Source: Chlorokybus atmophyticus (taxonomy: Eukaryota > Plantae > Mesostigma and Chlorokybus algae). From it: 64,000 bases of DNA. The notes beneath the pieces were generated by a model, which saw nothing but the letters and a program-made list of their open reading frames with translations, had not been told where the DNA came from and did not search any database. The DNA lies in contig RHPI01002568.1 of assembly GCA_009103225.1 (NCBI GenBank), forward strand, positions 75,742 to 139,741, read 5' to 3'. The translations under genes and the position numbers were made by a program. Position 1 is the first letter of the stretch, and each line of letters starts with the position of its first letter. This document shows positions 5,805-52,841 of the stretch, one piece after another.

Positions 5805-5806
5805 GC

Positions 5807-8290: not shown

Positions 8291-9941
8291 AGGGCCCAGC
8301 GAGCAAGTTTCCCTGTCAGATGTTAGTTGATCATTAACCACTTGAGTGGCTGATGATCGGTAATCAACTGGAATTGCCGACCAAAGAGGAAAGGTCTGAA
8401 GAAGGAGATAGCCCACACTGCAGCAAGGCACTCCCCCTCGTAGCTGCTGTAGTTGGCCTCAGCGCTGTTGTTGCTTCGGCTGGCGTATGACACCACCCGC
8501 TCCTTCTTGTTCTCATCGTGCTGTACCAGCACAGCCCCCATCCCAAGCTTGCTCCAGTCGGTGTGGTGGATGAAGGGCTTGTTGTAGTCAGGGCGTTGCA
8601 GGATGGGAGCGGTGGTGAGCTTGCCCTTTAGCTCCTCAAACGCCTGCTGTTGTGGCTCCTTCCACGCAAAATCTATCTCTTCTTCAGAAGCTCGTTGAGG
8701 GGTCACGCGATGTTCGCAAAATACTTCACGCACCGGCGAAGGTAGTTGGCAAGGCTCAGAAAGGCGCGCAGGCGCGTAAGGTCTGTTGGAGCAGGTATAG
8801 CCGCCAAGGCCTCCACCTTTGCCTGCTGTACGTACACACCGTGGGGTACAACTATGCGCCCGAGGTAGGGTACCTTGCGAGTGAAAAAAGTGCACTTGTC
8901 GGGGTGCACCGTCATCCCCACCCCCTTGAGTCTCTCCAGCACTTCCTCAATGTGATGTAGGTGCTCTTTGTTGCTGCGGCTGAAGATGAGAATGTCGTCA
9001 ATGTAGCATCGCGCGAAGTCCAGCTCCTTCAAGGCTTTGTCCATGACGCGTTGAAACTTCCCAGGAGCATTCTTCAGGCCGAAGGGCATGACCTTCCATT
9101 GGTACAGCTGCCGGTTGCCCCAGAAAGAGGTCTTGTGCTTATCCTCCTTGATGGCAATCTGTGTGGAAAATATAGCATGGTTTGCAGTGCTCTCTACATG
9201 TATAGCATATGACACTTATATGCTATTGTCCAGTCAGCTTAGCTAGCCCTATTGTAGCTTATTAAGTTGGTACTTGATAAGCTACTCATAGACTGCAGTT
9301 GTATGTATAGGCTGCAGGCAGTTAGAACTGGTGCAGTCTGGTCTGGTCTTTAATAGGACCCAGACTGAGGGCCCAGAGCCGACAGGCCGCGGGTTATTAA
9401 GTTAATTCACTCTCAGGTCAGTACCTTTGGCGGTGTAGCTCTGCTCTTACCACTGTGCTGTGGATGCTTGTTGTGCATGGTTGCGTGCAGCATCTCTAGT
9501 CAACAATCTGGTTGTACCCTTCTTGTCGCATGTCCAGGACGCTGAAGACGGTACAGTCTCAAACATCATAAAAGATACCCTATATGTAGTAGGCATTCGA
9601 TACCTGTTTTATTTGGTTCTGTTGTTGAGGGGGTGATAGTCGCCGCACATACGCCGGTCTGTTTAGTTGCCTGCTGAATCCTTCTTCAGGGGCATGACGG
9701 TCGCGGCCGCAAAGTCCGATGTGGACTCTTCAATAAGGCCTGCATCTAGCAGAGCCTTGCACCTTTGCTCCAAGGCTTCTTCCCATTTGGAGAGTCGCTT
9801 TTGTTGTCGAAACACTAGTTCGGTGTCCACCAACTCAATATCCGTCTGGTAAACTAAGCAAACGCCCAATTCCTTCACGCTGAAGCTAAACTGACTCCTC
9901 CACTTGTCGAGGAGAGCCTCAAGTTGTTCTCGTGTCTGGCC
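8290..9941 (-). pseudogene. pol: Gypsy reverse transcriptase and RNase H (decayed)
   Basis: YQWKVMPFGLKNAPGKFQRVM, CYIDDILIFS, HTDWSKLGMGAVL, YASR; frameshifted and interrupted at 9162-9505. Confidence 0.9.
9162..9505 (+). repeat. Solo LTR (more divergent relative) with 5-bp TSD ATCTG
   Basis: TGTGGAAAATAT...TAGTCAACA with atctg on both sides; removing it restores the RT sequence YNQIAI. Confidence 0.8.
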
Positions 9942-10407
9942 TGTTGAAGGACTACCATGCACATGTAGCTGAGGCAAGCATGGATATACACGGACAGAGC
10001 TACCGCCACCAGAGCATACACAAGTCACATCACATTCATCTATTACAAGTTGTCCGCTGGTTCTTATACCAGCCAGTTACACACCCGTCTACATTTGCAA
10101 GCACTGCGTAAGCTATACTTACCCTTTTAACGCGCTCTAAGCTGTGTTGTCTTCCTTACAACCAGAGCTTTCCAACAAGCTCTTACACGTCTAATATGAG
10201 TAAGTATACGCGAAGATACAAAGCAGTTAGTAAGGCTCCAGTCTGGAGTCCGGAGTCTGGTCTGACGACGCCATCTTGCTAAGTCCGGACCTAGTGCTCG
10301 TCTTTACGACCTTCTATTCTTGTGTGGAGGGTTGATGCTGATCGTATGTAGGAATACTCTCAACACTCCCACGCGAGCAGCTTGACCTCCAACGCTTGCT
10401 CCTGTAG

Positions 10408-13400
10408 TCAAACACAGATGCCAAGTCCTGCACAACAAGTCTTGAACTTGAGCGGTGACAATGGCTTTGTCATGAAGTCCGCCAGCATGCCCTCAGTGTT
10501 GCAGTACTGGAACTCCACCTCCTTCCTTGTGACTCTGTCACGCACAAAGTGATGCATGACATCAATGTGCTTCGTCCTTGCCGAGGCGATATGGTGCTTC
10601 AACAACTTGATGGCTCCTTGGTTGTCACAGTTGATGACGATGCACGCCATGGGGTGCTTCAAGTCTGCCATGAGCTTGCGAAGCCAGAGTGCCTCCTTCG
10701 CTGCTGCTGCCGCTGCCATGTACTCAGCCTCTGATGTACATGCTGCTGTTGTTGGCTGCAGCCTGCTGTTCCAGCTCACCACGCCTCTGTTCAGCTTGAA
10801 GACGTAGCCTGTAGTGGACCTCCTGCTGTTGAGGTCACCAGCAAAGTCTGAGTCGCAGTAGCCCTCCAACTCAATGCTCCCGCTCCCAAACTTGATGCCA
10901 ACTGTTGCGCTCCCAGCAACATAGCGTAGTACTCCCTTTGCTGCTCTCCAGTGCTCCATGCTCGGTGCAGACATGTACCGAGCAAGTACTCCCACAGCAT
11001 GTGCAACATCGGGACGTGTGCACACTGCCAGATAGAGCATGCTGCCTACCAGCTCACCATATGCATACCGAGCCTTGTCGAGTACCTCCTCATCCTTTGC
11101 CTTGATGAGGGTAGTGCCAAGTGCCAACGGTGTGGTCTTGGTCTTCGCTTCAGTGAGCCCAAACCTGGTGACGAGTCTTCTCACCATCTGCTCCTTACTA
11201 ATCTTGATTGTGCGAGCAGCCCTGTCGCGCTCAATCACCATGCCAAGGAACCACTTGGCCTCTCTAAGATCACGGACTGAGAATGCTTGCTGTAGAGCAA
11301 GTTTCGTCTCCTGCACGTGGTGCACCTGCCTGGCGGTGATGATGATATCATCAACATACACGAGCAGCCAGACTTTGTTGTCTACATGGATGAAGAGCCC
11401 AGGGTCTGCAGAGGATGCGGTGAAGCCAAGTGCCTCCAGCTCCTTGGTGAGCTTGATGTGCCACATACGCGGTGCCTGTCGCAGCCCGTACAGTGCCTTG
11501 ATCAGCTTGCACGCTGTGCCTCTCTCCCCTTCTTCATATCCAAGTGGTTGCTCGATGAAGATCTCCTCCTCCAGCTCTCCGTAGAGGAAGGCAGTCTTCA
11601 CATCCAGGTGACGAAGCTCTAGGTCTTCAGCAGCAACCATAGCTAGTAGTGCACGGAAGGTGGTATGCTTACTTGCAGGTGCAAACACTTCGTTGAAGTC
11701 CACACCTTCCTGCTGCAAGAAGCCCTTTGCCACCAGTCTTGCCTTGTAGCGCTCAATGTTGCCCTGACCATCACGCTTCACCTTGAAGACCCATTTCACT
11801 GGAATGGTCTTCACTCCTTGCGGTAACTGCTCCAGTGACCAAGTGTTGTTGGCATGGAGTGACGCAATCTCCTCGTCCATAGCACGCTGCTATTGCTCCG
11901 CATTTGGTGCTAACAATGCCTCCTCGTAGGTGCTTGGCTCCTCATTTTGCACACTGGCGACGTGTGCCTTGTATAGGAAGTCAGGTGCCTTTCTCTCCCT
12001 CACTGGGTATCTCCGAGCTGCGTGCTCCTGCTGTTTGTACGGCTCCTCTTGGCCTGCTACAGCTGAGTCCTGCTCACCCTTGTTGTTGATGATGGCCTTG
12101 CATGTAGCCTCCACTGTTTCAGGATGCTCCGGCTGTGCTTCATCTTCAGAAAAGAAGCCTGCTTTTGGTTGTGATAATCCCTCGTGGAAAACCACCTCTC
12201 TGCTCACAATAATCTTCTAAGTGTCCTCGAGCATGATCGTGTAAGCCTTGGAACCCGGTTCATAGCCAACGAAGATGCCCTTGTTGCTGACCGGCTCCAG
12301 CTTGTGCCTGAGCTGTTTAAGCACTAGTGCATATGCCGTGCATCCAAACACATGCATACTACTCACATCTGGTGTGGCTCCATAGAAGTGCTCCCACGGA
12401 GTCTTCTGCTCTAAGCTCACCGGAGACCTGTTGCGGATGTAGTTGACAGTGAGTACCGCTTTCTTCCACAGACTGTCTTCCATCTTTGTGTCGTTGAGCA
12501 TGGCTCGAACACGCTCCAAGATGGTCCTGTTGAGGTGTTCAGCTGCTCCATTTTGCTGCGGGGTGTAGGGTGCCGTTGTCTCGTGGCGTATGCCCTTGCT
12601 GGTGAAGAACTCCTTCACCTCCATGTTGATGTACTCCCCTCCTCGGTCACTCCTCATTGCCTTCATCTTGTTGCTAGACTGCGTCTCCAACAAGGCCACA
12701 ACTGTGCGCACAGCTCCAGCGACTTTTGACTTGAGCGTCAATGGAAAGATGATGGGCAGTTTGCTGTAGTCGTCGAGGAATGTAGCAAAGTACCTGGCCC
12801 CTCCCTTCGCCACAATGCGCATAGGGCCACAGACATCTATGTGCACAAGCTCACAAGGATGCTAACTGCTAGGAGAGGATGATGGGAATGGCATAGCATG
12901 CTGCTTTGCAACCAGGCATGGTTCACAAAGCGCACCTGATGCATGTTTGAGTTCTTTTGTGCTGAGATGGATGCTCTTGACCATCTTCTCAGCGACAAGG
13001 CGAGTGAGGTTGACGTAGCTGAGATGCCCGAACCTTCGATGCCACAATGTTGGCGACTCCTTGTCCTTCACTACCATGGCTTGAATGTCAATGTCCTTAG
13101 GGTGCTGCTCCACGTGGTAGAGCCCTCCCGGACCAGTGATTCCAACCATGTGCACGACCCCATCAAGGATGACTGAGCAGCCACCCTTCCGAAATAGGAT
13201 CTCCGCGCCTAAGCGTTCCGCAACCCTCACAGAGAATAGACTCGCAATAGCCTTAGGAACATGCAGCACGTTGCGTAACAACACCTCGCGTAGTGTGTTA
13301 CTAATCTTGCACTGGAGTCGTACGTTGCCAACTCCCTCAGCCACCAGTACTTCGCCACCGAAGCCCGCCACCTTGATTGTGGACGTCAGCTTCCTGTAGC

Positions 13401-14310
13401 CCTCCATCACCTCCTTGTTTGGTGTGAGATGACGATCGCAGCCAGAGTCCACCTAAAAAGCTATGCCCGCCCTCGAACTGGATGCAATGAAGGCGACATG
13501 TTTCTTCTTGTGTTGGTGCTCGTTGCCGCTGTTGCTGGTGCTTGCTCTTGGTTGCCCCTGTTGTTTCTTCCAACCATCCTTCACAATGTGCCCCTTCCAA
13601 CCACACCAGTGGCATGTGAGGTCTTTGTGACGAGGATTGCCTGGCTTGTTGCCCTTGTTCTTCTCTTCATGGTTGCTCTTCTTTCCGTGCTTATTGGTGT
13701 AGAAGGTTACGGCATCAGCTTATTCGTCCTTCTTCATCACCCTCTGCTCCACGGTGAGCAGCTTCGGTAGTACATCGTCCAGCGTCAGCTCTGATGACGA
13801 TGTCTCCAGCAGTGTTGCAACGACCTCGTACTCTGCTGGTAGCCCTGCAACAACAGCCAGCACAACCTCCGTCTCCCCCATGTTATGGCCGACGTTGATG
13901 AGGTCCGCCCACAGCTCTCTCGCACGCGCAACATACTTTGTGATGGGTTCTGCTGCCTCCTTCCTCAGTGCGCTCAGCTGCTTGCGTAGCTGCAACTTTC
14001 TGGCGTTGTTCTTGGCTCTGAAAACGGCTGATAGCTTTTCCCAAGCTTGTCTACCATCTTCACATGCAGTGAGCATGGGAAAATGATGCGGTTTGCAGTT
14101 CAACACAAGCAAAGAATGTGCTTCTGCTGAATGCTCTGACCACACAGTGTTCACTCCTGGTATTAGTGGTGGTGCCTTCGGATCAACGTACTTCCACACC
14201 TTCTTGTGGATGAGCAAGGCCTTCATCTCCACGCACCATGTGTTGTAGTTGTCGGTGTCCAGCTTTGCAATCTGCCCCTTGTCGTAGGTCGCCTCCATTT
14301 CTGTCAAGCC
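10408..14310 (-). pseudogene. pol: Copia gag-pol polyprotein: one reading frame broken by five in-frame stops
   Basis: KLDTDNYNTW (gag), CHWCGWKGH knuckle, VDSG protease, LWHRRFGH, HIDVCGP and RSDRGGEY integrase, RYKARLVAKG and LLVYVDD RT, GYCDSDFAG RNase H. The track ORFs ending at 13720, 12862, 12217, 11890 and 10408 share one frame. Confidence 0.93.
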
Positions 14311-14412
14311 TGCCATTCTTGCAGCTGACACCCAAGGCTCTGCTACCAACAAGCTACCGTAGTGTAGAACTACTATGCACACAAGCTAGTCTCACACTCC
14401 TCAAGCGTAGTG

Positions 14413-14425
14413 TGAGCCCATAACC
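14413..14425 (-). promoter_or_regulatory. Copia primer-binding site of the internal (half-molecule) initiator tRNA-Met type
   Basis: GGTTATGGGCTCA immediately follows the 5' LTR end; the GGTTATGGGCCC type is established for Drosophila copia, Ty5 and Volvox Osser. Confidence 0.75.
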
Positions 14426-14879
14426 TGTTGAAGGACTAGCATGCACATGTAGTTGAGGCAAGCATGGACACACACGGACAGAGCTACCGCCACCAGAGCA
14501 TACACAAGTCACATCACATTCATCTATTACAAGTTGTCCGCTGGTTCTTATACCAGCCAGTTACACACGTCTACATTTGCAAGCACTGCGTAAGCTATAC
14601 TCAGCCGTTTGACGCGCTCTAAGCTGTGTTGTCTTCCTTCCAACAAGCTCTTACACGTCTAATATAAGTAAGTATACGCGGAGATACAAAGCAGTTCGTA
14701 AGGCTCTAGTTTGGAGTCCGGAGTCTGGTCCGACGACGCCATCTTGCAAGTCCGGACCTAGTGCTCGTCCTTACGACCTTCTATTCTTGTGTGGAGGGTC
14801 GATGCTGATCGTATGTAGGAATACTCTCAACATGGCCTGTAGCCAGTGGTCCAATGGGACCAAGAGGTAGCGTTGGCAA

Positions 14880-16060
14880 CTGCTGGGATGTCCTCCACAA
14901 TGACTGCTGCCTGCTCTTTCATATAGGCGATTTCGAGGGCGGTGTGTGCCGCTTTGGTCTCTTGCACGCGATCGGCCCACCCCGCCGCCAGGTGTTCGAG
15001 CTCTTGAAAAAACACATGGCGGTCCTGAAGAGCAAAGCACATATGCTTTTAATAACCATACCATGCTATTCTAATCCATGGCGCGTCCCACCAGCTGACA
15101 TTGCTGACTGTCGGTCAGCGTGGAACCTGTGATACTGCCTGGAGAGAATCCGATGGCGCGTTCGCGCTCACATGCATTGGATTCCTCCAGTTGGCCTGGG
15201 GTAGAATCCAACACCATGCCGTCGCCGTGGTTGCGGAAGGCGTATGATTCTAAGTAAGACACTAGAGTGGGGAGCGCACGACGTGGTTAACCAGGCTGGT
15301 TGCACTGGTAGAAGTGCTGGTGATCGTGTCGGGTGACTGGTTGTGATGTGCGCCCAGGGTCCATGATAGCGTCGATGGTGAGATCGCGTGGACGGCTGCT
15401 GTTCAGATATTTAACAGCAAAGAGATCCTCGTCGGTAGCCAGGTTGGTCCACTTGGCGCGGACGCGATGAGCACGGGAGCCATGCCGTGCTGCATTGATT
15501 TTGAGAGGATGTCTCATCAAGGAACACACCTGTCAAAAGCTGTTGGCCACGTGATGGCGCTTATCGTCCTCGGAGTGCACATTCTCGGTGATGTATCCCG
15601 GAGGCCTGGACAGCTAGTTGCTCTGCAGGATTTTAATGGCACGCAGCAGTTCTCAGAACAGTTGCGAGCGAAGATCAGCGAGTCCTTGGCCTCTGCCGGC
15701 TCTCGAGTGTCCTTGACACTCCCATTCTGCTATCAACAGGTCGATGTTGCCCACCGCCAGGAGGTGATCCGCAGTGATTAAATGATGTCCTGTGGCAGTG
15801 CCTTCAGACTGCCTTGCAGTGCCGATAGCGGCAATCGCTGCGGGTAGCATTGGTATATGTGGCGCAGGTGGTGGCTCAGGGCCAGCTCGTCGTGCGGATC
15901 AGGGTCACAGTAGAAGTACTTGGTGACCGGCGCGGCGGTGTTGAGGACCGCGGCGAGGCCGCTACGTATACCACTAAACAGTTCCAACACGGTGATGCCT
16001 TGTTGTCGACGGAATACGTGAAACTCCACTACTCGAGTGGCCACCTGGTGTTGCTCCTGG
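14880..16060 (-). pseudogene. DNMT3-like C5 cytosine methyltransferase domain of the decayed gypsy
   Basis: ITVLELFSGIRSGL (motif I), IDLLIAEWECQGHSRAG (IV), NAARHGSRAHRVRAKWTNL (VIII), ERERAIGF (IX), QLVGRAMD (X); stops and frameshifts. Confidence 0.85.
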
Positions 16061-16385
16061 ACCGCAGCTTGGTCCTTGTAGAGAGGGAGCCGTGAAGTGA
16101 GCCGTGGTCTGGTCAGTAGTAGATGTGCGACCACCTGTGTGCGCCAGCGGTGTTCTGGTGGGCCACTTCTTTGGTTGCATTTTTAGACTCGTTGTATGGG
16201 ATAGGAGAGTCTTGGTCAGAGTTGTAGGTGACCACCGCAGCTAATCTGCTGGAAGTTGTCGAAACCGACCTGTGGGTGGCTGTTGCAGCTGACAAGTTAG
16301 TGGTTGTTGACAGCGACCTGTAGGTGGCGGTTGGGGCTGACCTTCGGTGAGAGCGAGTGCGAGCCACCAGCTCGAGAGGCAGATA

Positions 16386-16851
16386 TGTTGAGATTCGGAC
16401 ACTACTGAGCATGCATGGAGTTGGTGCAAGCGCAAGTACACACACTCCAGAGCATACACACAAGGCTGATCCAAAAGGCTTTCTAAGGATTACAACAAAG
16501 TCACACCGCGGGCTTTTATACCCGCCAGTTCTGCACCTGTCTACTCTAGAAGCCACCACGACTTCTACACTCAACCGATTCCTGCGCTCTAAGTTGCACC
16601 ACGTAGCTACTTTCAAGAGCTTTGCAACAAGCTATGACACGCGCCATAAAATGACGTAACCACCGAGCTACAACGTTTCTTCTACAGCGCCTGGAAGTCT
16701 CCAGACTCCGGACTCGACTCCGCGCCTGGAACCTTCTCGACTGAAGTCCTCGCCTGGACCTTTCTCGACTGGAACCTTCTCGCGCCTGAATTTTCTCGCG
16801 GCTATTCTTATCCACAGGGCAAGCTGACCGGATACAAAAATATCCTCAACA
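16386..16851 (-). repeat. Copia-family solo LTR with 5-bp TSD AGATA
   Basis: TG...CA termini with agata on both sides; reverse copy of 729-1197; removing it restores EVQGYLPLELV. Confidence 0.9.
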
Positions 16852-17300
16852 AGATATCCTTGAACCTCTTTATCCTCTTCGTCCCAATGAGGACGAAACC
16901 ATGCCTTCTCTGTCCAGCAGTCCAGCCCCATGCCAACAGGGAAGTTAAAGTCATGTCCCAGCAGCAGGTCGAAGGATTCTGCGTCGGTGACCACACACCT
17001 CTATACGACCTCGGTACTGTGGGAAGGGTCCACTCCTATTAAGCGAATGCAGAGGCTTGCTTGGTGATGCCAATCACCTTGTCACGGCTGCCGGCTGCTG
17101 TGTCGAGCACGTATGGGCACGGCATTAGCTCAGCGCTGGTGATGCCAAGGTCGCGTGCGAGGTAACGTCCGATGATGACGGGTTGGGCTGTAATGTCCAG
17201 CATCACACGCTTGGGTGCTCGTCCATTGAGAGTGACACGCTTGCCTTGGTTGGCAATTATTGCTGCATTGGCGTGGATGCGCAGCCGCTCGAATTGTTGG
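16852..17300 (-). pseudogene. pol: Gypsy aspartic protease (decayed)
   Basis: KRVMLDITAQPVIIG and SFDLLLGHDFNFPVGMGLDCW are homologous to 23747-24150. Confidence 0.85.
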
Positions 17301-17669
17301 TAGCGTGTGCGTGGGGTGACTGCTGCTGCAATCTCCTCCGGTGGTCGAGCGCAGTGCGGCAAGCGCCCTTCAATCAGCTGGGTCTTGAGAACCTTCTGGA
17401 CCGCGGCCTGACCCGAACCGTCCTTGTCTTGGCTGTTGATAAACACACTGTGGCCTGAGTGCTGGCGGTGCTGCCTGTGGCTGCCCTGGTTGTGGTGCAG
17501 GGGGATTGCGCCTTTGTGTGGCCGGGTCCATTCCTGGCGGCATAGGCAGTAGCTGTTGGGGAAACCCTGGAGGACTGAGTGTTTGTGGCTAACCCCCGCA
17601 ACACGCTGATGATCAATGTGGCCATCTTGAACGGAGGCAGGTTGTTGAGCGCGCAGACGTCTTCGCTTC

Positions 17670-18867
17670 TTCCTGTGGGTTTTGTGCCCAAAGATCAGCT
17701 TCACAAGGGGGTGACAACATGTACCCCTTTCTAAAGCCACTTATAGACGAGCTCAAATTACTGCTGCTTGAGGGCTTCACCTGCAATTACGCCCTCCCCA
17801 CCTCTGAAGTTTGCCCTGACCTGCACTCTCAAGCAGTCGGTGCTACCACGCGCTTGCGTGCGATGCTGCTCATCTGGGCTGATGATTACCCAGCCCAGTG
17901 TCAGGTACTAAAGATGAAAGATGGTGGCATCTTGGGCTGCCGTAGATGCTGGTGTAAAGCCCAGCCCTACATGGAAGAAGCCCAAAGGCCTGTAATGCGC
18001 AAGGCTGCTCCAGTGTCCGACGATGAGCAGGTGTCTGCTTGCAAGAAGCTGAAGGCTGTTTCCAAGTTCAGCAGCCAAGCAAAGTCTGCTAGCAGGAATA
18101 AGACGCAGGCGGCTGAGAAGAAGCAGATGAAGAAGAAGGAGAAGCAACCTGCCAGCAAGAAGCGTGCTGCTGCATCAACCAGCAATGGTCCAGCTGGTCC
18201 TAGCAACTCCCAAGCAGTGGAGCTCAACACCTACCAGAAGAAGGTCTACCGCTACGATCACAACTTCATGCACTTAGGACATCCATGGCCCGAGAGAGAA
18301 GAACAGGAGACTCTGACCAACATTGATAAGCTGGAGACTGCTGCTACCCCTGCTATTGGAACACAAATCAGCATGGAGACAGGTGTCATGTTGAGAAGCA
18401 AGCATGCAAGTGAAGAGGGCAAGTAACGACGCGCAGGAGAAGGCAACACAGTTCCCAATTTATTACCAACAGACCGCGGGGTTATATACCCGCCAGTCAG
18501 TACATAGTTTGTACACACTGCTGGTCTACATGCAACAGCGTCCGATATACTGAACCATATCGTACGCTGTAAGATGTGCCACGTAGCTAACTTGATAAGC
18601 TTTGAAACAAGCTATGCCACGTCCTATAAGACTAAGTATCCTAGGAGATATGACGATTCTCCTAGGACCCTTCTCTGCAGTCCGCGCCAGGACCTTCATG
18701 TCCGGAGTCTTCGAGGTCCTCCCATCGAGGTCCCTTCTCTTCTCTCTTGTATGCAGGGCAGGCTGACCGGATGTAGGAATATCTTCAACATGTCACAGGC
18801 AAGAGCCAACTGTGGCGCCTCTACCATGCCTACGGCTTCAGCCCACTCAAGGACGTGGTGTACGATG
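17670..18867 (+). pseudogene. En/Spm(CACTA)/Plavaka-like DDE transposase, 5' part
   Basis: YPFLKPLIDELKLLLLEG, LRAMLLIWADDYPA, GCRRC; reads through to DVVYD after removing the solo LTR at 18389-18790. Confidence 0.65.
18389..18790 (-). repeat. Copia-family solo LTR with 5-bp TSD TGTCA
   Basis: Minus-strand start TGTTGAAGATATTCCTACATCCGGTCAGC; tgtca on both sides; removing it restores METGVTGKSQLW. Confidence 0.88.
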
Positions 18868-19470
18868 TGTCATGCCTATCGCCCAAGCATGCCAGTCGTC
18901 ATCGGGCATGCCTACAGCGAGACCCTCGCCCGGCTTACCAGCATGGCAACCCGCGCGCGCCTCTGACCAGTAGCTAGGTCATGTCCCTAGAGTAGCTCGT
19001 GACCATAGCCTGCATAGGCACCGCGCGTAGCTGTGCAGTTGTGAGTTCAGTTATAAGTCCGGTTCTATATCGAGTGGGCATTTCCTGTGGAAATAGCCTC
19101 AATATAACCGTTAGCTTATGTTCTGGACAGTCATGAGTTGACTTGTATAAGTAGGCACAGTGTTCACCGGATCAGCTGGTGACACTGTAAGTGAGAAAGC
19201 TAAGAGCTTGTGAAGCGACTTGAACTACGAACACAACGTCCTGGTTCCCAAGAATCCCCTCACCGTGTGAGAGCCTGTGCATGTTCTTGTGCACTGTGCT
19301 TGTTCTTGCTGTGAGCTTTGTGTACTTGGTCGCGGTGTGCTCGTTGGCATCAGTCAGGGCATAGCATCCACGTGTTGCTTGCTCATTCATCTCACTGAAC
19401 AGTGTATTCCTCTCCCACTCACGCAAAGAACTGTGTAAACAGCACTACCTATAGTAGTGGCTTGTTGACT
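18868..19470 (+). repeat. 5' terminal repeat B1 (595 bp) plus the first 8 nt of repeat A
   Basis: Near-identical to 29102-29705. Confidence 0.93.
19146..19150 (+). promoter_or_regulatory. Candidate TATA box of the element
   Basis: TGTATAAGTAG is conserved in all three B copies and lies about 30 nt upstream of the self-complementary 15-mer at 19178. Confidence 0.5.
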
Positions 19471-19482
19471 TACAGTGTCACC
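19468..19482 (+). promoter_or_regulatory. Candidate self-priming primer-binding site
   Basis: ACTTACAGTGTCACC is the exact reverse complement of GGTGACACTGTAAGT at 19178-19192; no TGG-initiated tRNA PBS follows the repeat. Confidence 0.65.
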
Positions 19483-19681
19483 CTCTTTGCTCAAGTGAGT
19501 GTAGTTGCAAGCTGTACATCAGCATCGCAATCTGTAGTTGTACACATCACAGTGCAGTGTTGTCACCGTCATCGCATAGCGCGCACAAGCGCTAGTGTGT
19601 TGGGTGATAGCAGCATTAGAGATCCCATTGTAGAACACAAACACTCTACCCTTTATCCACTTTCACCATCGCACCAGCTGT

Positions 19682-22600
19682 ATGAGCAGGCCCACCCCGT
19701 TCTCCCCAATAGACGAGGGTGACCTCAGCAGTTGGAGCCCAACCACCAACCTCACATACGAGCGGACCAGTGACGGGAGCATCAACCGCAGCAGCAGAGG
19801 CCAGCGCTCCATCTCCGGCTTCACCCCGCTCCACTCTACTCCTCGTCATCAAGCTTCTCCACTATCATCGGACAGCGACGACAACAAGATGGAGTCTTCC
19901 AGTTCAACCACATCCCTGCGCTTCTCCGGACGTGCCGGCACCACCTCGCTGGATGAGTTCATCATCAAGTTCCACTCCAAGATGCGGCAGCAAGCTCTGA
20001 AGAACAAAGACTGGTCAGATGAGATCTCTTTCCACATTGCTGCTCAGTATCTTGATTATGAAGCACACGATGTCTGGAAGTCCGTTGCTGAACTGCATCG
20101 AGTAGACGGCTATGGCGAGCTTGCCAGCACCATAGCATCTGCATCGCTGCACCGTCCAACAGGTGTCGTTCCACCTGCCACTTCAGTTGCAGTAACAGGC
20201 TTGTCCATAGCTGCAGCTCTCAAGCAGGCAGAGGAGGAGGAACCGGAGTTGGTACTTGTCAACTTGACCCCTGCAGAAGTTGAGTCCAAGGAGGCCACAC
20301 GTCGAGTCCGCATCCTTGACCGTTCTGCCGTCATCATTGAGGAACAAAAAGCTGCACAGCAAGCGGCAGCCGCAGAGTGGGGTCCTCCTCTACCTCCGGC
20401 AACACCTAGCTCTCGTGCGGGAGGCAGTACCTTCACCCTCGGGTCAGTAGCACTGCGTGCACCAGCCATCTCCGTAGGTGCTGCCATCTCTGATTTGCCA
20501 CTCAAGGATCTGTACGCTGCCCTGCGCCGCACCTTCCCTCCTCAGACCACCAGCAAGGTTGAGGAGCTGAGACGCTTCCGACGCAAGCCCAATGAGGATC
20601 CCCTCCGCTTGTACTCCAGACTGGAAGGTCTGCTAGAGGACACTGATTACAGGATTGTCAGTGAGGAGGCTGCTGCAGTGATATGCGTCAATGAGTTGGA
20701 TGCTGCTCTGAGCGAGTCGACACGCCTGACTCTGAACTACAGCAGGCCCCTTGGCTACACCCTCAAGGAAGCTTTCGAGACTGCAGAAGCCATCCATAAG
20801 CGCGCAGTGTATGAGAAAGCGGTGCTGGACACCAATCGCAGTGCCTCACGGCCTATGGCAGGCACAAGTGCAGAGCCTCCTCGGCGGGACCGCAGCCGGG
20901 AGTCGCAAGGCATCCATTACAAGGATAAACGGTCAGCTCATGCTGCCCTTGTGGCTCCAGTGCTGTGCCACCGGTGTGATCGACATGGCCACTACAAAAA
21001 GGAGTGCACCGAAGATTACGGCAACCTTGTGTGCGACCACTGCCACAAGACGGGACACTTGGAGACAGTATGCTGGCTCAAGTTCCCTGAGCTGCGGCCC
21101 CCTATTGGCTACAACAACAGCAACAACGCTGTTGGCTACCGCGGCCACAACAACCACAACAACAACGGGGGCTACAACAACAGCAACCATGCTGGCGGCC
21201 ACAACAACAGCAACAACGCTGGTGGTCGCAACAACGGCAATTACGCTGGTGGCCACAACCCCAACAACAACAGCAACGCTGGCGCCCGCAAGGAAGAAGC
21301 TGGCTATAGGGGGAAAAACCGCCCTCCACAGCACAAAGGACTTGAGGGACGTCCTCGCGCTGGAGCTGCTGCTGTCAAGGCACCAACCAATCCACCGGCT
21401 ATCGACCAAGTGGCAGCCCTGATGGCGCGCGTGGCACAGCTGGAGGAAAACAAGGAGCAGGACTATCAAGCCTGCTATGCTGCTAGGTGGGCATTGATGG
21501 CACCGAAACGGGATAGGGACACTCCCACGCCGTCACGCGTACAACCATCCAGACGGGCGCGCAGGGAAGCTGGCGCGTCGTCAACAGCGGCATCGTCGGA
21601 CGCCACAAGTGGTGCTGCCTCGGCAGCCACAACCACCGCTGGGACGACGCCGTCGACGACACCGTCGGCGTCCACACCGACTACGACAGCAGGTGTCAGC
21701 ACTCTTGGCACCACGCTGTTCCCGGTGATGGAGAGCACCCACGCCGCAGCAACCATGGTCGTTGGGTTCGTAAGTGGTGAATCCACCACTCCTGCCTCCA
21801 TCGGAGCGACCACATCAACCGCAATTGCTGCCACCCTCACAGCCGCCACTTCAATGACGACGACTGCGGCAGGTGCCACCACCATCGCCTCCAGTAGTGC
21901 TGCCATACCCACCGCACCACTTCCTGAAAGCCGGACGGCACCGCCACCAGCATTGGACGTCACACAGCAAGTGCCACGCGGGCCGCAAGCAGAACGCGCC
22001 TGGGCGTCGATTCTACGCAACGTGGAGCCCACCACTATTGCGTACGGACCAGGGGGGCAACGCACCACGCGCGTGGCACGCGATGATTGCATCTTGCCCC
22101 TACCACCGCCAGAATACCACACGCTGCCAGAACCCACACAACAGCAGCTGGAGGATGAAATCCTCGCCGGCACTGCACCAGAGATGAGGGATCGTCTGTT
22201 CGGGGTCACCTATCGCCGACCTGCGGTGTTGGAACTGGCCATCCAGTTATTCCTGGCATTACATGCACGGTTGCAGGGCGCACCCAGTCAATCGCGACAG
22301 CCCATGCCCGCTCAACAGATTGACTTCGAGCCTTCGCCACTGGACCTACTCGGCCTCCAGCGACACAAACTCCAAGACCTCGTGGTCACGATGTCTGACA
22401 TCGCGCTGGGCGCTGATCCCGCTCTCCGGGGGCTCACTCCAGGCAGTCGTCAAGAGCGTTTTTCTGCACTCGAACAGGCCCATCGGTATCGCATGGACCA
22501 AGCTGCCCAAGTGGACGCGCGCCGACAAGCGTACGAAGCAGCACACGCCGTTATCGTACCAACCGTAGCGCCAGCACATGTTGCCAGCGCCTCCACGGCG

Positions 22601-23737
22601 CCGACCACAGCACACTCCACTGCGATGGCCATCGAGCAGCCGGGACACGCAACTGTTGCAGACCAAGCGAGGGCGTTGGCGCAACAATTGAGGGGAGTAA
22701 TTGCCCCGCTGCTGCCTCCTTTGGTCGAAGACATGCCTGAGGATCAACGCGATGCAGGGCGAGGGTACCTCACCCCGCAAGGGGACACCACACAACGAGG
22801 AGGAGCTGGTATGGTGGGGGAGCAACAACTCCGTACCGCACTCATCCGGCAAGCAGTCATGTTGCACAGGCCTGAGGGCAACACATTAAGACAGATGATG
22901 GGGATGCAAGAGGGCAGCGCCGCGCGAGCTCGTCTCGTGACATGGCTTGTTGCCAATCACCCTGCTGTCCCTCTGTTTGCCTTTGGCAACCGAGCATCAT
23001 GGTTGGGGGCATTCGTTCGTTCGCTGCGACAAGCATACGACGAGGCTGCCACCACAGCCCCGGACACGCTGGAGGGAGTGCAAAAGGCAATGCTTCGGCT
23101 GCCAGGGGTGGAAGCCGCACGGCAACGGCGGCGCATCGCCATTGCTCATGAGCTACACGTACAGCAGACTGACCTCCAGCGCACCCTACGTGCTCGCGCC
23201 ATGACTGTGCTCGATGTGGGAGTGGTACAAGGAAGGTGGGATGCCTACATGGCAGGGATCCTACGAGTCCCCACCATTACTCACGACATGCGGCGACAGC
23301 TGCTACGCGCCGTATACCTGCAGCCCATGCCTCAATATCATCATTGGACCGACACGGACACCGAGCCCACGGCCACGTGGGAAGGGACATTGGTCAGAGA
23401 AGCGGCTCATGCTGTGCGATGGACGTACGCCGCGGAGCAAGCTGAACGCGAGGCAGGCCCACAAACACCGGGTCCACCGGGGTTCCCTCCACAGCCACTG
23501 GGTACGCCCGCGGGCATGATTCCAGCTTCGCAGAGGCGTCATCCACCTGCGCCGCAACCACAACCGGCGCCGGATCCTCCAGCACCGAGGCCCCCCCGTG
23601 TCTACCAACCACCTCGACAAGGTCGGTTCGGCAGAGGGAGAGGGCAAGGAGGGGGTTCTCCGGACCCAGCAGGCAGAGGAGCTCTGGCTGCCATGCGCTC
23701 AGCATCTCCAGCTGAGGCAACTGAGTCAGAGGAATAG
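19682..23737 (+). CDS. gag: Gag-like polyprotein, 1351 aa, with two CCHC zinc knuckles and a long C-terminal extension
   Basis: Open frame; CHRCDRHGHYKKEC and CDHCHKTGHLETVC; lies between the 5' repeat and the protease. Confidence 0.88.
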   Translation: MSRPTPFSPIDEGDLSSWSPTTNLTYERTSDGSINRSSRGQRSISGFTPLHSTPRHQASPLSSDSDDNKMESSSSTTSLRFSGRAGTTSLDEFIIKFHSKMRQQALKNKDWSDEISFHIAAQYLDYEAHDVWKSVAELHRVDGYGELASTIASASLHRPTGVVPPATSVAVTGLSIAAALKQAEEEEPELVLVNLTPAEVESKEATRRVRILDRSAVIIEEQKAAQQAAAAEWGPPLPPATPSSRAGGSTFTLGSVALRAPAISVGAAISDLPLKDLYAALRRTFPPQTTSKVEELRRFRRKPNEDPLRLYSRLEGLLEDTDYRIVSEEAAAVICVNELDAALSESTRLTLNYSRPLGYTLKEAFETAEAIHKRAVYEKAVLDTNRSASRPMAGTSAEPPRRDRSRESQGIHYKDKRSAHAALVAPVLCHRCDRHGHYKKECTEDYGNLVCDHCHKTGHLETVCWLKFPELRPPIGYNNSNNAVGYRGHNNHNNNGGYNNSNHAGGHNNSNNAGGRNNGNYAGGHNPNNNSNAGARKEEAGYRGKNRPPQHKGLEGRPRAGAAAVKAPTNPPAIDQVAALMARVAQLEENKEQDYQACYAARWALMAPKRDRDTPTPSRVQPSRRARREAGASSTAASSDATSGAASAATTTAGTTPSTTPSASTPTTTAGVSTLGTTLFPVMESTHAAATMVVGFVSGESTTPASIGATTSTAIAATLTAATSMTTTAAGATTIASSSAAIPTAPLPESRTAPPPALDVTQQVPRGPQAERAWASILRNVEPTTIAYGPGGQRTTRVARDDCILPLPPPEYHTLPEPTQQQLEDEILAGTAPEMRDRLFGVTYRRPAVLELAIQLFLALHARLQGAPSQSRQPMPAQQIDFEPSPLDLLGLQRHKLQDLVVTMSDIALGADPALRGLTPGSRQERFSALEQAHRYRMDQAAQVDARRQAYEAAHAVIVPTVAPAHVASASTAPTTAHSTAMAIEQPGHATVADQARALAQQLRGVIAPLLPPLVEDMPEDQRDAGRGYLTPQGDTTQRGGAGMVGEQQLRTALIRQAVMLHRPEGNTLRQMMGMQEGSAARARLVTWLVANHPAVPLFAFGNRASWLGAFVRSLRQAYDEAATTAPDTLEGVQKAMLRLPGVEAARQRRRIAIAHELHVQQTDLQRTLRARAMTVLDVGVVQGRWDAYMAGILRVPTITHDMRRQLLRAVYLQPMPQYHHWTDTDTEPTATWEGTLVREAAHAVRWTYAAEQAEREAGPQTPGPPGFPPQPLGTPAGMIPASQRRHPPAPQPQPAPDPPAPRPPRVYQPPRQGRFGRGRGQGGGSPDPAGRGALAAMRSASPAEATESEE

Positions 23738-23746
23738 ACACCTCGC

Positions 23747-24898
23747 ATGAAGAGGCTGCGTATCGACGCCAACGTTGCCATGGTGGCCAACCAAGGCAAG
23801 CACGTTACCATCAACGGTCTGGCACCCAAGCGGGTAATGTTGGACACCGGAGCACAGCCTGTCATCATCGGGCGCTTCCTCGCGCGGTCCCTAGGCATAA
23901 CCAGTTCCGACTTGGTGCCTTGCCCGTACGTGTTGGACACTGCCACAGGTAGCCGAGATAAGGTGATGGGAGTCACCAGGGAGGCCTTTTGCATTCGGTT
24001 GACAGGGCTGGACCCAACCCACACGACCGAGATCGTCCAGCAATGCGTGGTCACCAATGCCGGCTCCTTCGACTTTCTGCTTGGGCAGGATTTCAACTTC
24101 CCTGTGGGCATGGGCCTCGACTGCTGGACAGAACGAGCGTGGTTTCGGCCACATTGGGATGAGGACGACGGAGAGGTACAGGGCTTCCTGCCTCTCGAGT
24201 TGGTCTCGCGCACGCGCGCCCAACGCAAAATGGCTGCCATGGCCACACGCAGACACGCCCGCACCCGGAAGGCTGTAGTGGCCATATACGACGGTGCTCG
24301 GACCATCCCGTACAACGAAGAGCAGGAGGATGCCACCGTGGAAGTAGCATTACAAGACCCAGCTGAACGGCGCTGGCGCGCACAGGTGGACGCACACATC
24401 TTGCTCAGCCACCCACTGATCACCACGCGCTTCCCCAACTACCGAAGCCACGTCAAGGTGCAGGACCACCATATGGTGGCCACCGGAGTGGTGGAATTCC
24501 ACACCTTTCGCAGGCAACAGGGCATCACAGTGTTGGAGCTGTTTGGAGGCATTGGCAGTGGTCTTGCTGCGGTCCTCAACACGGGCGTGAAGGTTACCAA
24601 CTATTACTGCGACCCAAACCCACACGCGCAAACGGGCCTCAAGCACCACTTACGCCAACTGCACACCAGGTATCCACGGCAACTACCCCTCTCGGCGTTG
24701 CAAGGCAGCCTCAAAGCATTGCCACAGGATGTCCGGCTGATCACTGAAGATCACCTACTGTCCCTCGGCAACGTCGACCTGTTAATAGCTGGATGGGAAT
24801 GCCAAGGGCACTCCAGGGCAGGCAAGGGACAAGCTTGTCCCTTAAGCTTGTCCCTTAAGGCCTCGAAAACCCTCGCTCCAGGTTGTTCTGGGAGCTGA
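23747..24898 (+). CDS. pol: Pol N-terminal part: aspartic protease plus DNMT3-like motifs I-IV, ended by a frameshifting 26-bp insertion
   Basis: VMLDTGAQ, FDFLLGQDF, ITVLELFGGIGSGL, VDLLIAGWECQGHSRAG. Confidence 0.88.
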   Translation: MKRLRIDANVAMVANQGKHVTINGLAPKRVMLDTGAQPVIIGRFLARSLGITSSDLVPCPYVLDTATGSRDKVMGVTREAFCIRLTGLDPTHTTEIVQQCVVTNAGSFDFLLGQDFNFPVGMGLDCWTERAWFRPHWDEDDGEVQGFLPLELVSRTRAQRKMAAMATRRHARTRKAVVAIYDGARTIPYNEEQEDATVEVALQDPAERRWRAQVDAHILLSHPLITTRFPNYRSHVKVQDHHMVATGVVEFHTFRRQQGITVLELFGGIGSGLAAVLNTGVKVTNYYCDPNPHAQTGLKHHLRQLHTRYPRQLPLSALQGSLKALPQDVRLITEDHLLSLGNVDLLIAGWECQGHSRAGKGQACPLSLSLKASKTLAPGCSGS

Positions 24899-27800
24899 TG
24901 AGGATCATCCACCTCCTTCAACACCACCAGATCTCCAGACCCCTGGGGTACGTCATCGAAAATGTGCATTCAGAGGACGACAAGCGTCCGCACGTGGCCT
25001 CCAGCTACCGACAAGTTTGCTCCATTCTGGGGCACCCACTCAAGGTGAACGCGGCACGACATGGCTCGCGCGCACATCGTGTACGTGCCAAATGGACAAA
25101 CTTGGCCACCGTGGAGGAGCTCATGACCGCCAAATACACGCGCAGCGCTCGGCCGCGCAACCTGCTGGTCGACGACATCCTTGACCCCGGCCGCACAGCA
25201 CAACCTGTCCTGCATCATAACCACAACCACTTCTACCAGTGCAATCAGCCTGGTCAGCCCCGTCGCGCACTCCCCACATTGGTGTCCTACCCGGGCTCCT
25301 ACGCATTTCGGAACGGTGGTGACGGGATGGTATTTGATGCGACCACCAACACGCTGGAAGAACCCACCGCACGCGAACGTGAACGCGCCATGGGCTTCTT
25401 CCCCAACAGCATCACAGGTTCATTGCTGACAGACAGTCAGCAATGCCAGCTGCTTGGTCGCGCCATGGACCAGAACAGCATGGTATGGCTGCTGGAGCTG
25501 AGCTTCGCGTTGCAGGACCGCCACGTGTCCTTCGAGGATCTCGAACACTTGGCTGGGGGGTGGGCTGATCGCGTAGCCGACACCAAGGCAGCTCACACAG
25601 CTCTCGAGGTGGTCCACATGGAGGAGCAAGCGGCAGTGACAGTGGAGGACATTTCTGTGGTTGCCAATGCAACCTCCTGGGACCATGCCATTGGCCCGGT
25701 GGCCACGGAAGACACTCGAGAGAAGCTGGAGGCTCTCCTCAATAAATGGAGGAGCCAATTCAGCTTCAATGTGAAGGAATTGGGTACATGTTCGGTGTAC
25801 CAGATGGACATCGAGCTAGTGGACACTGAGCCGGTGTTCCGGCGACAATACAGGCTCTCCAAGTTGGAAGAAGACTTGGTGGAACAGAGATGTAAGGCGC
25901 TGCTGGATGCAGGCCTTATCGAAGAGTCCACATCGGACTTCGCAGCAGCAACCGTCATGCCCCTGAAGAAGGATTCAGCAGGCAACTGGACAGAGCGACG
26001 CATGTGTGGCAACTATCGTCCCCTCAACAACAAGACCAAGCAAGACCGGCACCCCATGCCCACAGCAGAGGGTATTTTTGATGATGTAGGAGACTGCACA
26101 GTCTTCAGCATCCTGGACATGCGTCAGGGGTACAACCAGATCGCCATCGAGGACGAGGACAAGCACAAGACCTCCTTCTGGGGCAACCGCCAGTTGTACC
26201 AATGGAAGGTAATGCCGTTCGGGCTGAAGAATGCCCCCGCCAAGTTTCAACGCGTCATGGACAAGGCCTTGAAGGGGTTGGACTGCGCGCGGTGCTACAT
26301 CGATGACATCCTCATCTTCAGCCGCAGCAACGAGGAGCATCTTCAGCACATCGAAGCGGTGCTGGAACGACTCAAGGGAGTGGGGATGACCGTACACCCC
26401 GACAAGTGTACCTTCTTCACCCACAAGGTGCCGTACTTAGGGCACATGATTGTGCCCCATGGTGTGTATGTGCAGCAGGCAAAAGTAGAGGCTCTGGCAG
26501 CTATCCCTGCCCCGACAGACCTCACGCGCCTGCGCGCTTTCTTGGGACTTGCCAACTATTATCGCCGATTCGTGAAGGACTTCGCGAAGATCGCAAGGCC
26601 CCTCAACGAGCTACTGAAAAAGGAGGTGGAGTTCGCGTGGAAGGAGCCGCAACAGCAGGCCTTCGAGGAGCTGAAGAGCAGACTCACCAGCGCTCCCATC
26701 CTTCAACGTCCGGACTACGCCAAGCCTTTCATCCTTCACACCGACTGGAGCAAGCTGGGGATGGGAGCGGTGCTGGTGCAGCACGATGAGCACAAGAAGG
26801 AGCGGGTGGTGGCATACGCCAGCCGAAGCAACAACAGCGCCGAGGCCAACTACAGCAGCTATAAAGGGGAATGCCTCGCTGCAGTGTGGGCCATCTCCTT
26901 CTTCCGACCTTTCCTCTTTGGTCGACAGTTCCAACTGATCACCGATTATCAGCCCCTCAAGTGGCTGATGACCAACCAACATCTGACAGGGAAACTTGCT
27001 CGATGGGCCCTGCTGTTACAGGAATACGACTTCGAGATTGACCACCGCGCTGGCCTCACCAACCAAGACGCCGATGGCCTCAGTCGCAACCCCCACCTCA
27101 GCACCAACGACGCAACTGGAGCGCGGCATGAGCTCATCCCTGCAGCAACAGCTCCCACCATGGCAGCCATGTTTGCTGCTGCCGCGTTGCGCTCAGGGCG
27201 CAAGACCAACACCACGGCCTCAGCAGTGGTAGAGGAGATTCCCGCCCTTGAGTCTACCGACCCTGCGGCAATCACACCCTTGGGAGACGCCCACGCAGCC
27301 GACATTGACGTCGATGACACAGAGCTGGCGTCCACTGACACCAGGCAGGACATATGGCACGACAAGCCATCACTTTCCTTTCTTCAACGTGGCCATCTCC
27401 CCTCTGGCATGAGCGCTCGAAAGAAGGACCGGGTCAACCAACGCACCCGTCACTATCGATGGGCAGGTGACAAGCTGTATCGCCGCTTCCACGACGAAGA
27501 CAAGGAAGTGCCGACACCAGTCACGCGCGAGGACATTATTGCTTCCCTCCACACTGAGCTTGGACACTTTGGTGTCAAGCGCACAGTCAGTTTAGTGAGA
27601 GCACAATATTGGTGGTATGGATTAACAAAACAGGTGCAAAGGTTCGTCAGTCACTGCCAGCAGTGTGACATGGTGCGCGCCAGCCTCAACACGCGTAGCG
27701 CCACCTTGCACCCACTCCCCATCTCCGGTCTCTTTTACCGATGGGGACTCGACATCTTGGGGGACTTGGCACCCTCAGCACGTGGCAACCGTTACATCCT

Positions 27801-28812
27801 GGTCATGATTGAGCACTTCTCCAAATGGGTGGAGCTGGTGCCATTACCCGACAAGAGCAGCAGGGGGGTGTCTCAAGCCTTCCTCTCTCACGTTCTCAGC
27901 CGCTTTGGCAGCTGCGCCGAGGTCATCACCGACCAAGGTACTGAGTTCAGAGGGGAATTCGACACCCTCTTGGACAAATGTTACATCGACCACCGCCGTA
28001 CCTCGCGTGATCACCCTCAAGCCGACGGCCTCGCCGAGCGGACGGTACAGACCATCAAGAAGGCACTCCGCAAATACGTGTTGGAGTACAAGAAGGACAC
28101 TTGGGATGACCACCTTCCATGGGTGGCCCTTGGATATCGGTTGTCAAAACAGGCGACTCTGCGGGAGTACAGCCCGTACTACCTGCTGTTTGGGCGACCA
28201 CCATTGCTCCCCTTCCGTGCGCAACAGGAGGTAAATCGCGTCGTGAACAACCTCGACGACCCTGACTGGATGCACCACGACATCACCACACGCGCCGCAC
28301 TTTTCGAGCGCACCGTCCCCATGGCCTTCAACAATCTGCGCATCGCGCAGCATCGCGACACGCTGCGCTACGAGCGCGTACGTAGCGGCTTTTATAAGGA
28401 GCGCCAACGGCGATTCCAAGCGGGGCACCTTGCCTATCGCATGGCAGCCACCAAAGACACGCTTGACACCTCCGTAGGCCGCACCGTCTACAAGGTACTC
28501 AAAGTGTACCCCACAGGGGTGCTGGACCTCCTTGGTCAAAACGGAGAAAGGTTGAAGGACAACATGGTGAACTGTGCGCCATGTCACCTCCCTTACGTAG
28601 CTGGCTTCGGGCGTATCCAGCACCCTCGTCCTGCGCGCAGCACATGCTGTGAACACTGCGGCAGCGCCGGCGACGACGCACTCATGATGCTCTGCGATGG
28701 CTGCAACAAAGGCCTGCATTGCTATTGCCTGGATCCACCTTTGGACACGATACCTATGGAAGAATATTGGTGCGACGACTGCCGTACCAACGGCCCTCCT
28801 CACTTGCGCTAG
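24883..28812 (+). CDS. pol: Pol C-terminal part: DNMT3-like motifs VI-X, RT, RNase H, integrase, PHD finger
   Basis: YVIENV, AHRVRAKWTNL, RERERAMGF, LLGRAMD; LDMRQGYNQ, PFGLKNAP, YIDD; HTDWS; H-H-C-C zinc finger, WGLD, DQGTEF, GLAER; C4HC3 PHD at 28648-28782. Confidence 0.93.
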   Translation: MFWELMRIIHLLQHHQISRPLGYVIENVHSEDDKRPHVASSYRQVCSILGHPLKVNAARHGSRAHRVRAKWTNLATVEELMTAKYTRSARPRNLLVDDILDPGRTAQPVLHHNHNHFYQCNQPGQPRRALPTLVSYPGSYAFRNGGDGMVFDATTNTLEEPTARERERAMGFFPNSITGSLLTDSQQCQLLGRAMDQNSMVWLLELSFALQDRHVSFEDLEHLAGGWADRVADTKAAHTALEVVHMEEQAAVTVEDISVVANATSWDHAIGPVATEDTREKLEALLNKWRSQFSFNVKELGTCSVYQMDIELVDTEPVFRRQYRLSKLEEDLVEQRCKALLDAGLIEESTSDFAAATVMPLKKDSAGNWTERRMCGNYRPLNNKTKQDRHPMPTAEGIFDDVGDCTVFSILDMRQGYNQIAIEDEDKHKTSFWGNRQLYQWKVMPFGLKNAPAKFQRVMDKALKGLDCARCYIDDILIFSRSNEEHLQHIEAVLERLKGVGMTVHPDKCTFFTHKVPYLGHMIVPHGVYVQQAKVEALAAIPAPTDLTRLRAFLGLANYYRRFVKDFAKIARPLNELLKKEVEFAWKEPQQQAFEELKSRLTSAPILQRPDYAKPFILHTDWSKLGMGAVLVQHDEHKKERVVAYASRSNNSAEANYSSYKGECLAAVWAISFFRPFLFGRQFQLITDYQPLKWLMTNQHLTGKLARWALLLQEYDFEIDHRAGLTNQDADGLSRNPHLSTNDATGARHELIPAATAPTMAAMFAAAALRSGRKTNTTASAVVEEIPALESTDPAAITPLGDAHAADIDVDDTELASTDTRQDIWHDKPSLSFLQRGHLPSGMSARKKDRVNQRTRHYRWAGDKLYRRFHDEDKEVPTPVTREDIIASLHTELGHFGVKRTVSLVRAQYWWYGLTKQVQRFVSHCQQCDMVRASLNTRSATLHPLPISGLFYRWGLDILGDLAPSARGNRYILVMIEHFSKWVELVPLPDKSSRGVSQAFLSHVLSRFGSCAEVITDQGTEFRGEFDTLLDKCYIDHRRTSRDHPQADGLAERTVQTIKKALRKYVLEYKKDTWDDHLPWVALGYRLSKQATLREYSPYYLLFGRPPLLPFRAQQEVNRVVNNLDDPDWMHHDITTRAALFERTVPMAFNNLRIAQHRDTLRYERVRSGFYKERQRRFQAGHLAYRMAATKDTLDTSVGRTVYKVLKVYPTGVLDLLGQNGERLKDNMVNCAPCHLPYVAGFGRIQHPRPARSTCCEHCGSAGDDALMMLCDGCNKGLHCYCLDPPLDTIPMEEYWCDDCRTNGPPHLR

Positions 28813-28849
28813 TAGCTGAGCTCTGGAGCTGGCACCTTCCCCAGAGCCC

Positions 28850-28862
28850 AGGGGGGGGGGCT
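28850..28862 (+). promoter_or_regulatory. Polypurine tract (A-G10) followed by CT and the TG start of repeat A1
   Basis: AGGGGGGGGGGCT-TGTTG; an equivalent tract precedes A1 in the decayed copy. Confidence 0.75.
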
Positions 28863-29099
28863 TGTTGACTCTGTATGCTACGGCACAGCATGTTCTTAGG
28901 GAAAACACCGACTCCATCTGCCCGTACTACCCAGCAGCAGCACCCCAGCTGCACTAAGCACTTGTCACCATGAGGGTGGGAGTCATCTTTCTATTCTTGC
29001 TACGCGTCACCCAGGTGGCGCAGCAGCATGTCCAGCACAGTATGGCTGTCCATGCAGCTGTCCGAGACAGCGTGACCCTCGACTCCCCTCGACCCGACA
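28863..29099 (+). repeat. Terminal repeat A1 (237 bp)
   Basis: TGTTGACT...CCCGACA; near-identical to 29698-29934. Confidence 0.93.
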
Positions 29100-29101
29100 G
29101 C

Positions 29102-52839: not shown

Positions 52840-52841
<2 letters not shown>

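Follow-up and report, generated by a model that had tools for sequence, protein, structure and literature searches.

We identified a Ty3/gypsy-type retrotransposon with split repeats in Chlorokybus atmophyticus whose reverse transcription is probably self-primed, as is that of the fission-yeast element Tf1; we put the probability of this reading at roughly 0.75. The element lies in a 64-kb stretch of DNA, the whole of which we analyzed and refer to as the window. Two observations carry the argument: (i) 15 nt at the predicted start of the element's RNA are perfectly complementary to 15 nt at the junction of the 5' repeat and the internal region; and (ii) pairs of complementary arms recur at the same two positions in nine further lineages, each with a sequence of its own. 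Self-priming is a known mechanism, and it appears to be new for this clade of split-repeat gypsy elements.

The element spans 11,067 bp on the plus strand (18868-29934), starts with TGTC and ends with GACA. By sequence reading, it is flanked by a GATG target-site duplication on the same strand (5' copy, 18864-18867; 3' copy, 29935-29938). Its plus-strand coding region holds a gag-like ORF1 of 1351 aa (19682-23737) with two CCHC knuckles and a long low-complexity tail; an aspartic protease, ORF2 (23747-24898; Pfam Asp_protease_2, E=1e-8); and a pol frame, ORF3 (24883-28812), in which Pfam recognized reverse transcriptase (RT), RNase H, integrase (H2C2 zinc domain and rve core) and a C-terminal PHD finger. 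ORF1 had no Pfam match and no homologue in a protein search. No chromodomain was found by Pfam; the PHD finger sits at the integrase C-terminus instead. We found no Pfam match to DNA_methylase (PF00145) in ORF2 or the first 372 residues of ORF3 (window 23747-26000), and the N-terminus of ORF3 aligns with the N-termini of relatives, many of which bear PF00145. The Pfam domain content identifies the element as Ty3/gypsy with a DDE integrase, and the order protease-RT-RNase H-integrase, the TGTC...GACA ends, the 4-bp duplication and an empty site are those of Ty3/gypsy (Metaviridae). The empty site came from a search of sequencing runs as Logan contigs, none of them recorded as RNA: a contig from one public run (run X1) joins the 5' flank straight to the 3' flank, with GACG in place of the window's GATG. 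This means either that the insertion is polymorphic or that a paralogue of the site exists. Neither of the two arms described below appeared in the variant table for the runs.

The repeats of the element are split, in the order A1-internal-X1-A2-X2, all on the plus strand. Repeat A1, the 5' repeat (603 nt, 18868-19470; TGTC first), contains the promoter, the predicted RNA start and the R region. Repeat X1 (28859-29101), which ends in GACA followed by GC, stands directly behind a polypurine tract of an A and ten G (28850-28860). Repeat A2, the 3' copy of A (29102-29705), is 98.2% identical to A1, and X1 is 97.6% identical to 29694-29944, a segment that includes repeat X2 (29694-29934) with the terminal GACA at 29931-29934. 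Twelve nucleotides, GGCTTGTTGACT, are common to the end of A and the start of X (19459-19470, 28859-28870 and 29694-29705), which makes the exact A/X junction ambiguous in the window. An 11-12 nt version of this overlap is found at about 6030-6045 in a second, minus-strand copy, described below. The shared 11-12 nt belong to the window's lineage only, the overlap being 0-1 nt in other lineages. This arrangement is the A-coding-B-A-B repeat order of the Gypsy-Dnmt3 type. We considered whether the split repeats mark a DIRS or tyrosine-recombinase element and rejected that reading, given the DDE integrase and the target duplication; the Pfam search of the element gave no match to Phage_integrase (tyrosine recombinase).

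An earlier note, made from the sequence of the window, had proposed that the 5' end of the transcript pairs with a primer-binding site as in Tf1, and its central observation holds. The proposed self-primer GGTGACACTGTAAGT (19178-19192, plus strand), corresponding to the first 15 nt of the predicted transcript, and the proposed primer-binding site ACTTACAGTGTCACC (19468-19482, plus strand) are exact reverse complements at 15/15 nt. The pairing is exactly 15 nt long, with the adjacent base unpaired on either side. Besides these two arms, the window has one more match, namely A2's own copy of the first arm (29412-29426). The first arm lies 28 nt past the end of a TATAA box (19146-19150, plus strand), or 32 nt past its first T, in agreement with the claimed spacing; A2 and the second subfamily have this box unchanged. 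The second arm straddles the junction of the 5' repeat and the internal region, beginning 2 nt before the end of A1 (19470), and it overlaps the repeat by 3 nt. No TGG occurs in the 60 nt after the 5' repeat, and the note's statement that a TGG-type primer-binding site is absent thus stands. The arm pair, its position and the absence of a nearby TGG are confirmed as real features of the element. The note had also pointed to a TGTAA as a candidate poly(A) signal about 25 nt before the end of the repeat. This motif (19434-19438, plus strand) is indeed conserved in the second subfamily, but its distance from the end of A is 32 nt, and it is not conserved throughout the relatives.

We asked how often such a pair would arise by chance. 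Matching a 50-nt window at the junction against the 563-nt repeat interior, the expectation is about 1.8e-5 matches, and complements to the repeat reached no more than 10 nt in 381 control windows of 50 nt that tile the internal region. In both the minimum free energy and the centroid fold of the predicted leader RNA (19178-19500), the 5' 15 nt are paired with 19468-19482, and the helix extends past these 15 bp; the z-score of the whole-leader fold is modest, at -2.1. ARAGORN found no tRNA within the 64-kb window, and a scripted tRNA search of the fetched relatives' loci recovered none.

We then fetched 90 relatives' loci and examined junctions in lineages with a 5' repeat or a collapsed repeat-to-gag junction; L083, L084, L085 and L087, which have no usable 5' repeat, were left out. 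The clade is large, extending over metagenomic contigs, Closterium, Klebsormidium, Marchantia and Calypogeia, with DNA_methylase and PHD domains in many members. For pol, the best local alignment in the searched protein collection reached at most 58% identity, and the relatives with arm pairs share about 40-58% identity with the window element over the best pol segment. Every junction so examined complements a stretch within A: an arm pair of 12-17 nt is present at the same position in nine further lineages (metagenomic, Marchantia and Calypogeia). In five of these nine, the first arm is preceded by a TATA-like box at a distance of 30-35 nt. The pairs are 16 nt in L082 (13392-13407 with 13978-13993; TATATAA about 34 nt upstream), 17 nt in L088 (1773-1789 with 1978-1994; TATATAA about 31 nt upstream), 17 nt in L020 together with L024 (1842-1858 with 2017-2033; a TATGAA-like box), 14 nt in L001 (5460-5473 with 5644-5657; no evident TATA box), 12 nt in Calypogeia fissa L090 (3939-3950 with 4122-4133; a TATAC-like box) and 14 nt in Marchantia polymorpha L089 (20761-20774 with 20941-20954; a TATAG-like box). 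In the moss-type elements L006, L007, L008, L014 and L032, RNAalifold returned a 15-bp consensus stem with TATAAAA about 32 nt upstream. We counted L086 (11820-11831 with 12184-12195) as weak, because its pair is 12 nt long and has no evident TATA box. The complement at the junction window exceeded that in every control window in the window element, L001, L006, L007, L020 and L082.

Arm sequences are unrelated between most lineages, apart from a frequent ...AGT at the 3' end of the first arm. We looked for covariation among those arms that can be aligned, a check suggested in the earlier note. A homologous 12-nt core in L020, L089 and L090 (liverwort/moss) carries three compensatory double changes (two from T-A to C-G, one from G-C to A-T), and every pair is still Watson-Crick; we counted these pairs directly, as MAFFT misplaced the Marchantia 3' arm. 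The second arm also has a fixed relation to the end of A. Read at the A2/X2 junction in the lineages checked, A runs up to the 5' edge of the second arm and then 0-3 nt into it. The extra length is 0 nt in L082, 1-2 nt in L020 and L090 and 3 nt in the moss group, as well as in the window if its ambiguous junction is so read. This is where A would be expected to end if minus-strand DNA starts at the second arm and a few primer nucleotides are retained.

These observations support the proposed Tf1-like geometry, since an arm at the predicted RNA start and an arm abutting the 5' repeat recur together in nine further lineages, each with its own arm sequence. From them we infer the RNA start (predicted from the position of the TATA box), the cleavage and the priming itself, as follows. 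Transcription would begin about 30 nt past the TATAA, at or near 19178, and the first 15 nt of the RNA would fold back over about 275 nt to pair with 19468-19482 just beyond the 5' repeat. The element's RNase H would then cut the RNA at the end of the duplex, freeing a 15-nt RNA with a 3'-OH. RT would extend this primer, making minus-strand DNA from opposite 19467 back to the cut 5' end, and the resulting strong-stop DNA would transfer to the copy of R within A2. Plus-strand synthesis would copy the primer as well, and each cycle would thereby rewrite the primer-binding site with the primer sequence. Recopying of the primer-binding site from the primer during plus-strand strong-stop synthesis is established retrovirology. 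Such rewriting would explain why the arms stay perfectly complementary despite sequence drift.

The main competing explanation, which we regard as improbable, is that the pairing is a conserved long-range stem closing the leader, with a role in packaging, dimerization, suppression of the 5' poly(A) signal or control of translation, and that another primer is used. The predicted fold suits this idea, as the leader forms a closed domain with further helices beside the 15-bp stem; the modest z-score leaves room for it as well, and priming is here a prediction from sequence. The placement of the arms, in contrast, is that of a primer and its site: the 3' arm is always 0-3 nt from the end of A, which would be the fossil 5' end of the minus strand, and the 5' arm coincides with the predicted first transcribed nucleotides. 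Nor does the junction offer an alternative TGG... primer site nearby. Full turnover of the arm sequence combined with perfect pairing in young copies is, in addition, the outcome that templated rewriting of a primer site would produce.

Less probable again is a variant in which the element primes itself, but the primer is cut from the 15-mer in A2 (29412-29426) or is supplied in trans by a second, co-packaged RNA. The same 15-mer is present in A2 of the same transcript, and sequence cannot tell which copy pairs; the TATA-like box 30-35 nt upstream in the window and in five relatives' lineages nevertheless points to the 5' end, and cutting at the internal copy would leave the cDNA with a very long RNA attached. 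We consider it very unlikely that a host tRNA, a tRNA half or another small RNA is the primer and that the match to the repeat interior is incidental. Priming by tRNA halves does exist in some copia lineages (PMC6317226). The site, however, is wholly different between lineages and changes along with the arm inside the repeat, a turnover that a host tRNA could not produce because tRNAs are conserved. A tRNA primer likewise cannot give covariation of the two arms; Tf1-type self-priming can do so, as every cycle copies the primer back into its site. The absence of TGG and a chance expectation of 1e-5 or less per element weigh against an incidental match as well. Self-priming from the 5' end of the RNA is accordingly the reading that we prefer.

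The window contains a second, diverged copy of the element on the minus strand (4487 to about 17289), in which the 3' layout is kept and the 5' end is missing. Its primer 15-mer, GGTGCCACAATGAGT as read on the element's strand (5449-5463, minus strand), differs from that of the first subfamily at 4 positions. The primer site predicted for this subfamily, ACTCATTGTGGCACC, is present in the window solely as the complement of its own primer, the 5' end of the copy being outside the window. It had been claimed that the 15-mer varies between the subfamilies while its flanks are conserved. A marginal excess is seen, with 4 changes in 15 nt versus 6 in 80 flanking nt (p=0.049), but the 15-mer does not stand out against the repeat as a whole, which is diverged by 17%, and we downgraded the idea of a mutational hot spot on this ground. 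Other repeats share the window with these two copies. An LTR element of about 4.9 kb (9940-14832; 426-nt repeats, 92% identical) is nested in the second copy, and one member of a short repeat family with copies in inverted orientation (729-1197, 16386-16851 and 4712-4940) interrupts its X2. A different LTR element at 49931-56498 has 364-nt repeats at a spacing of 6204, with N after the 3' repeat; the repeats are 100% identical and the element therefore looks very young.

If the second arm is the primer-binding site, the starts of both DNA strands are fixed, and we compared the product that they predict with the integrated copies. With a polypurine tract ahead of X and a primer site behind A, reverse transcription should yield X-A...X-A. 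Integrated copies, unlike this prediction, have the form A...X-A-X, with TG...CA ends that correspond to an internal GACA-NN-TGTC palindrome. The A-internal-X-A-X layout is found in seven distinct complete copies among the relatives, L006, L007, L008, L014, L020, L032 and L090 (L016 is a repeat of L007). The same single permutation is thus present in all 8 distinct complete copies, the window and seven relatives, and L024, which is cut by the contig end before X2, is consistent with it. GACA-NN-TGTC occurs at the X1/A2 junction in L007/L016, L014, L020, L024 and L090, as well as in the collapsed contigs L001 and L082, and was not found at that junction in L006, L008 and L032. A G-run abuts the start of X1 in seven of the eight relatives' copies checked (L006, L008, L014, L020, L032, L082 and L090); in the eighth, L007, the listed repeat start lies about 55 nt inside X, so the tract is out of view. 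The copy in Calypogeia fissa (L090, 3782-13709) is a recent insertion, as judged from its near-identical repeats (A, 99.4%; X, 100%), and has a 4-bp duplication, GTCA. Two metagenomic contigs are of unusual structure: in L082, positions 1-400 equal 16416-16815 and the X-A unit is present twice at 100% identity, and in L086, positions 1-8934 equal 11536-20469. Both are circularly permuted or tandem assemblies of one element, which could reflect either an assembler artefact or real tandem or circular DNA.

Under self-priming, the A2/X2 junction would bring together the end of A, set by the primer and including 0-3 of its nucleotides, and the start of X, set by the tract. It would resemble a fossil two-LTR-circle junction. 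The occurrence of a single permutation in all copies suggests that the intermediate is end-joined or circular and that its opening at an internal att site is asymmetric. We tried to derive A-internal-X-A-X from a linear cDNA by standard strong-stop jumps and rejected this route by reasoning, since the right-hand X cannot be joined to the fixed 5' end of the minus strand. As the linear derivation fails on this reasoning, a joined intermediate is favored. We offer as a tentative possibility, one that we would not yet bet on, that the clade joins its cDNA ends obligatorily, as a circle or end to end, and that the DDE integrase opens an internal att site, always the same one of its two copies. If true, the clade would offer a natural example of a retroviral-type integrase that integrates DNA from a circle junction.

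To our knowledge, self-priming has been proven in fission-yeast Tf1 only. The primer duplex of Tf1 is 11 nt long, compared with 12-17 nt in the present clade. A chromodomain at the integrase C-terminus is typical of Tf1/Sushi elements, and the window element differs in having a PHD finger in its place, a comparison of domains rather than of phylogeny. DIRS-order elements use a tyrosine recombinase and make no target duplication. The split direct repeats of DIRS, PAT-like and Ngaro elements (A1-internal-B1-A2-B2) are like those described here; the DDE integrase, the TG...CA ends, the 4-bp duplication and the lack of a tyrosine recombinase set the present element apart from them.

In Tf1 and Tf2 of Schizosaccharomyces pombe and Tj1 of S. 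japonicus, the primer-binding site beside the 5' LTR complements the first nucleotides of the mRNA that the element itself produces, a tRNA site is lacking, and the Tf1 and Tj1 duplexes lie within a larger leader structure (PMC4600332). The window element would share this plan, its second arm pairing with the predicted start of its RNA and the duplex lying within a larger predicted fold. The present element differs from Tf1 and Tj1 in its split repeats (A...X-A-X versus paired LTRs) and in that its priming is deduced from comparison of sequences. For Tj1, the Tf1/Sushi group, Tcn1 and TAR, self-priming was inferred from the same comparative signature (PMC4600332, PMC6317226). Neumann et al. 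2019 (PMC6317226) predicted self-priming for the Tcn1 clade (Ty3/gypsy; mosses and lycophytes) and for TAR (Ty1/copia). These elements resemble ours in the sequence signature and in their green-lineage hosts, which include bryophytes, and differ in being ordinary two-LTR elements; PMC6317226 makes no mention of elements with PHD or methyltransferase domains. The repeat layout has been described for KnitGypsy-Dnmt3 from Klebsormidium nitens, whose repeat structure is equated with that of a DIRS retrotransposon and given as A-coding-B-A-B in a figure legend (de Mendoza et al. 2018, PMC5890265); that paper contains nothing on its priming. KnitGypsy-Dnmt3 and the window element share the gypsy domain order and split repeats, and relatives found here carry DNA_methylase and PHD domains; in the present copy, Pfam found no methyltransferase domain.

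Self-priming in this clade would extend the mechanism from Tf1 to a widespread group of green-lineage gypsy elements with DNA-methyltransferase and PHD modules. It would also mean that a primer site can turn over completely and yet stay matched to its primer. In a family whose split repeats have been unexplained, the starts of minus- and plus-strand DNA would now be fixed; the ends made by RT would differ from those used by the integrase, and a joined or circular integration intermediate would become directly testable. The same signature is present in copies from the model plant Marchantia polymorpha.
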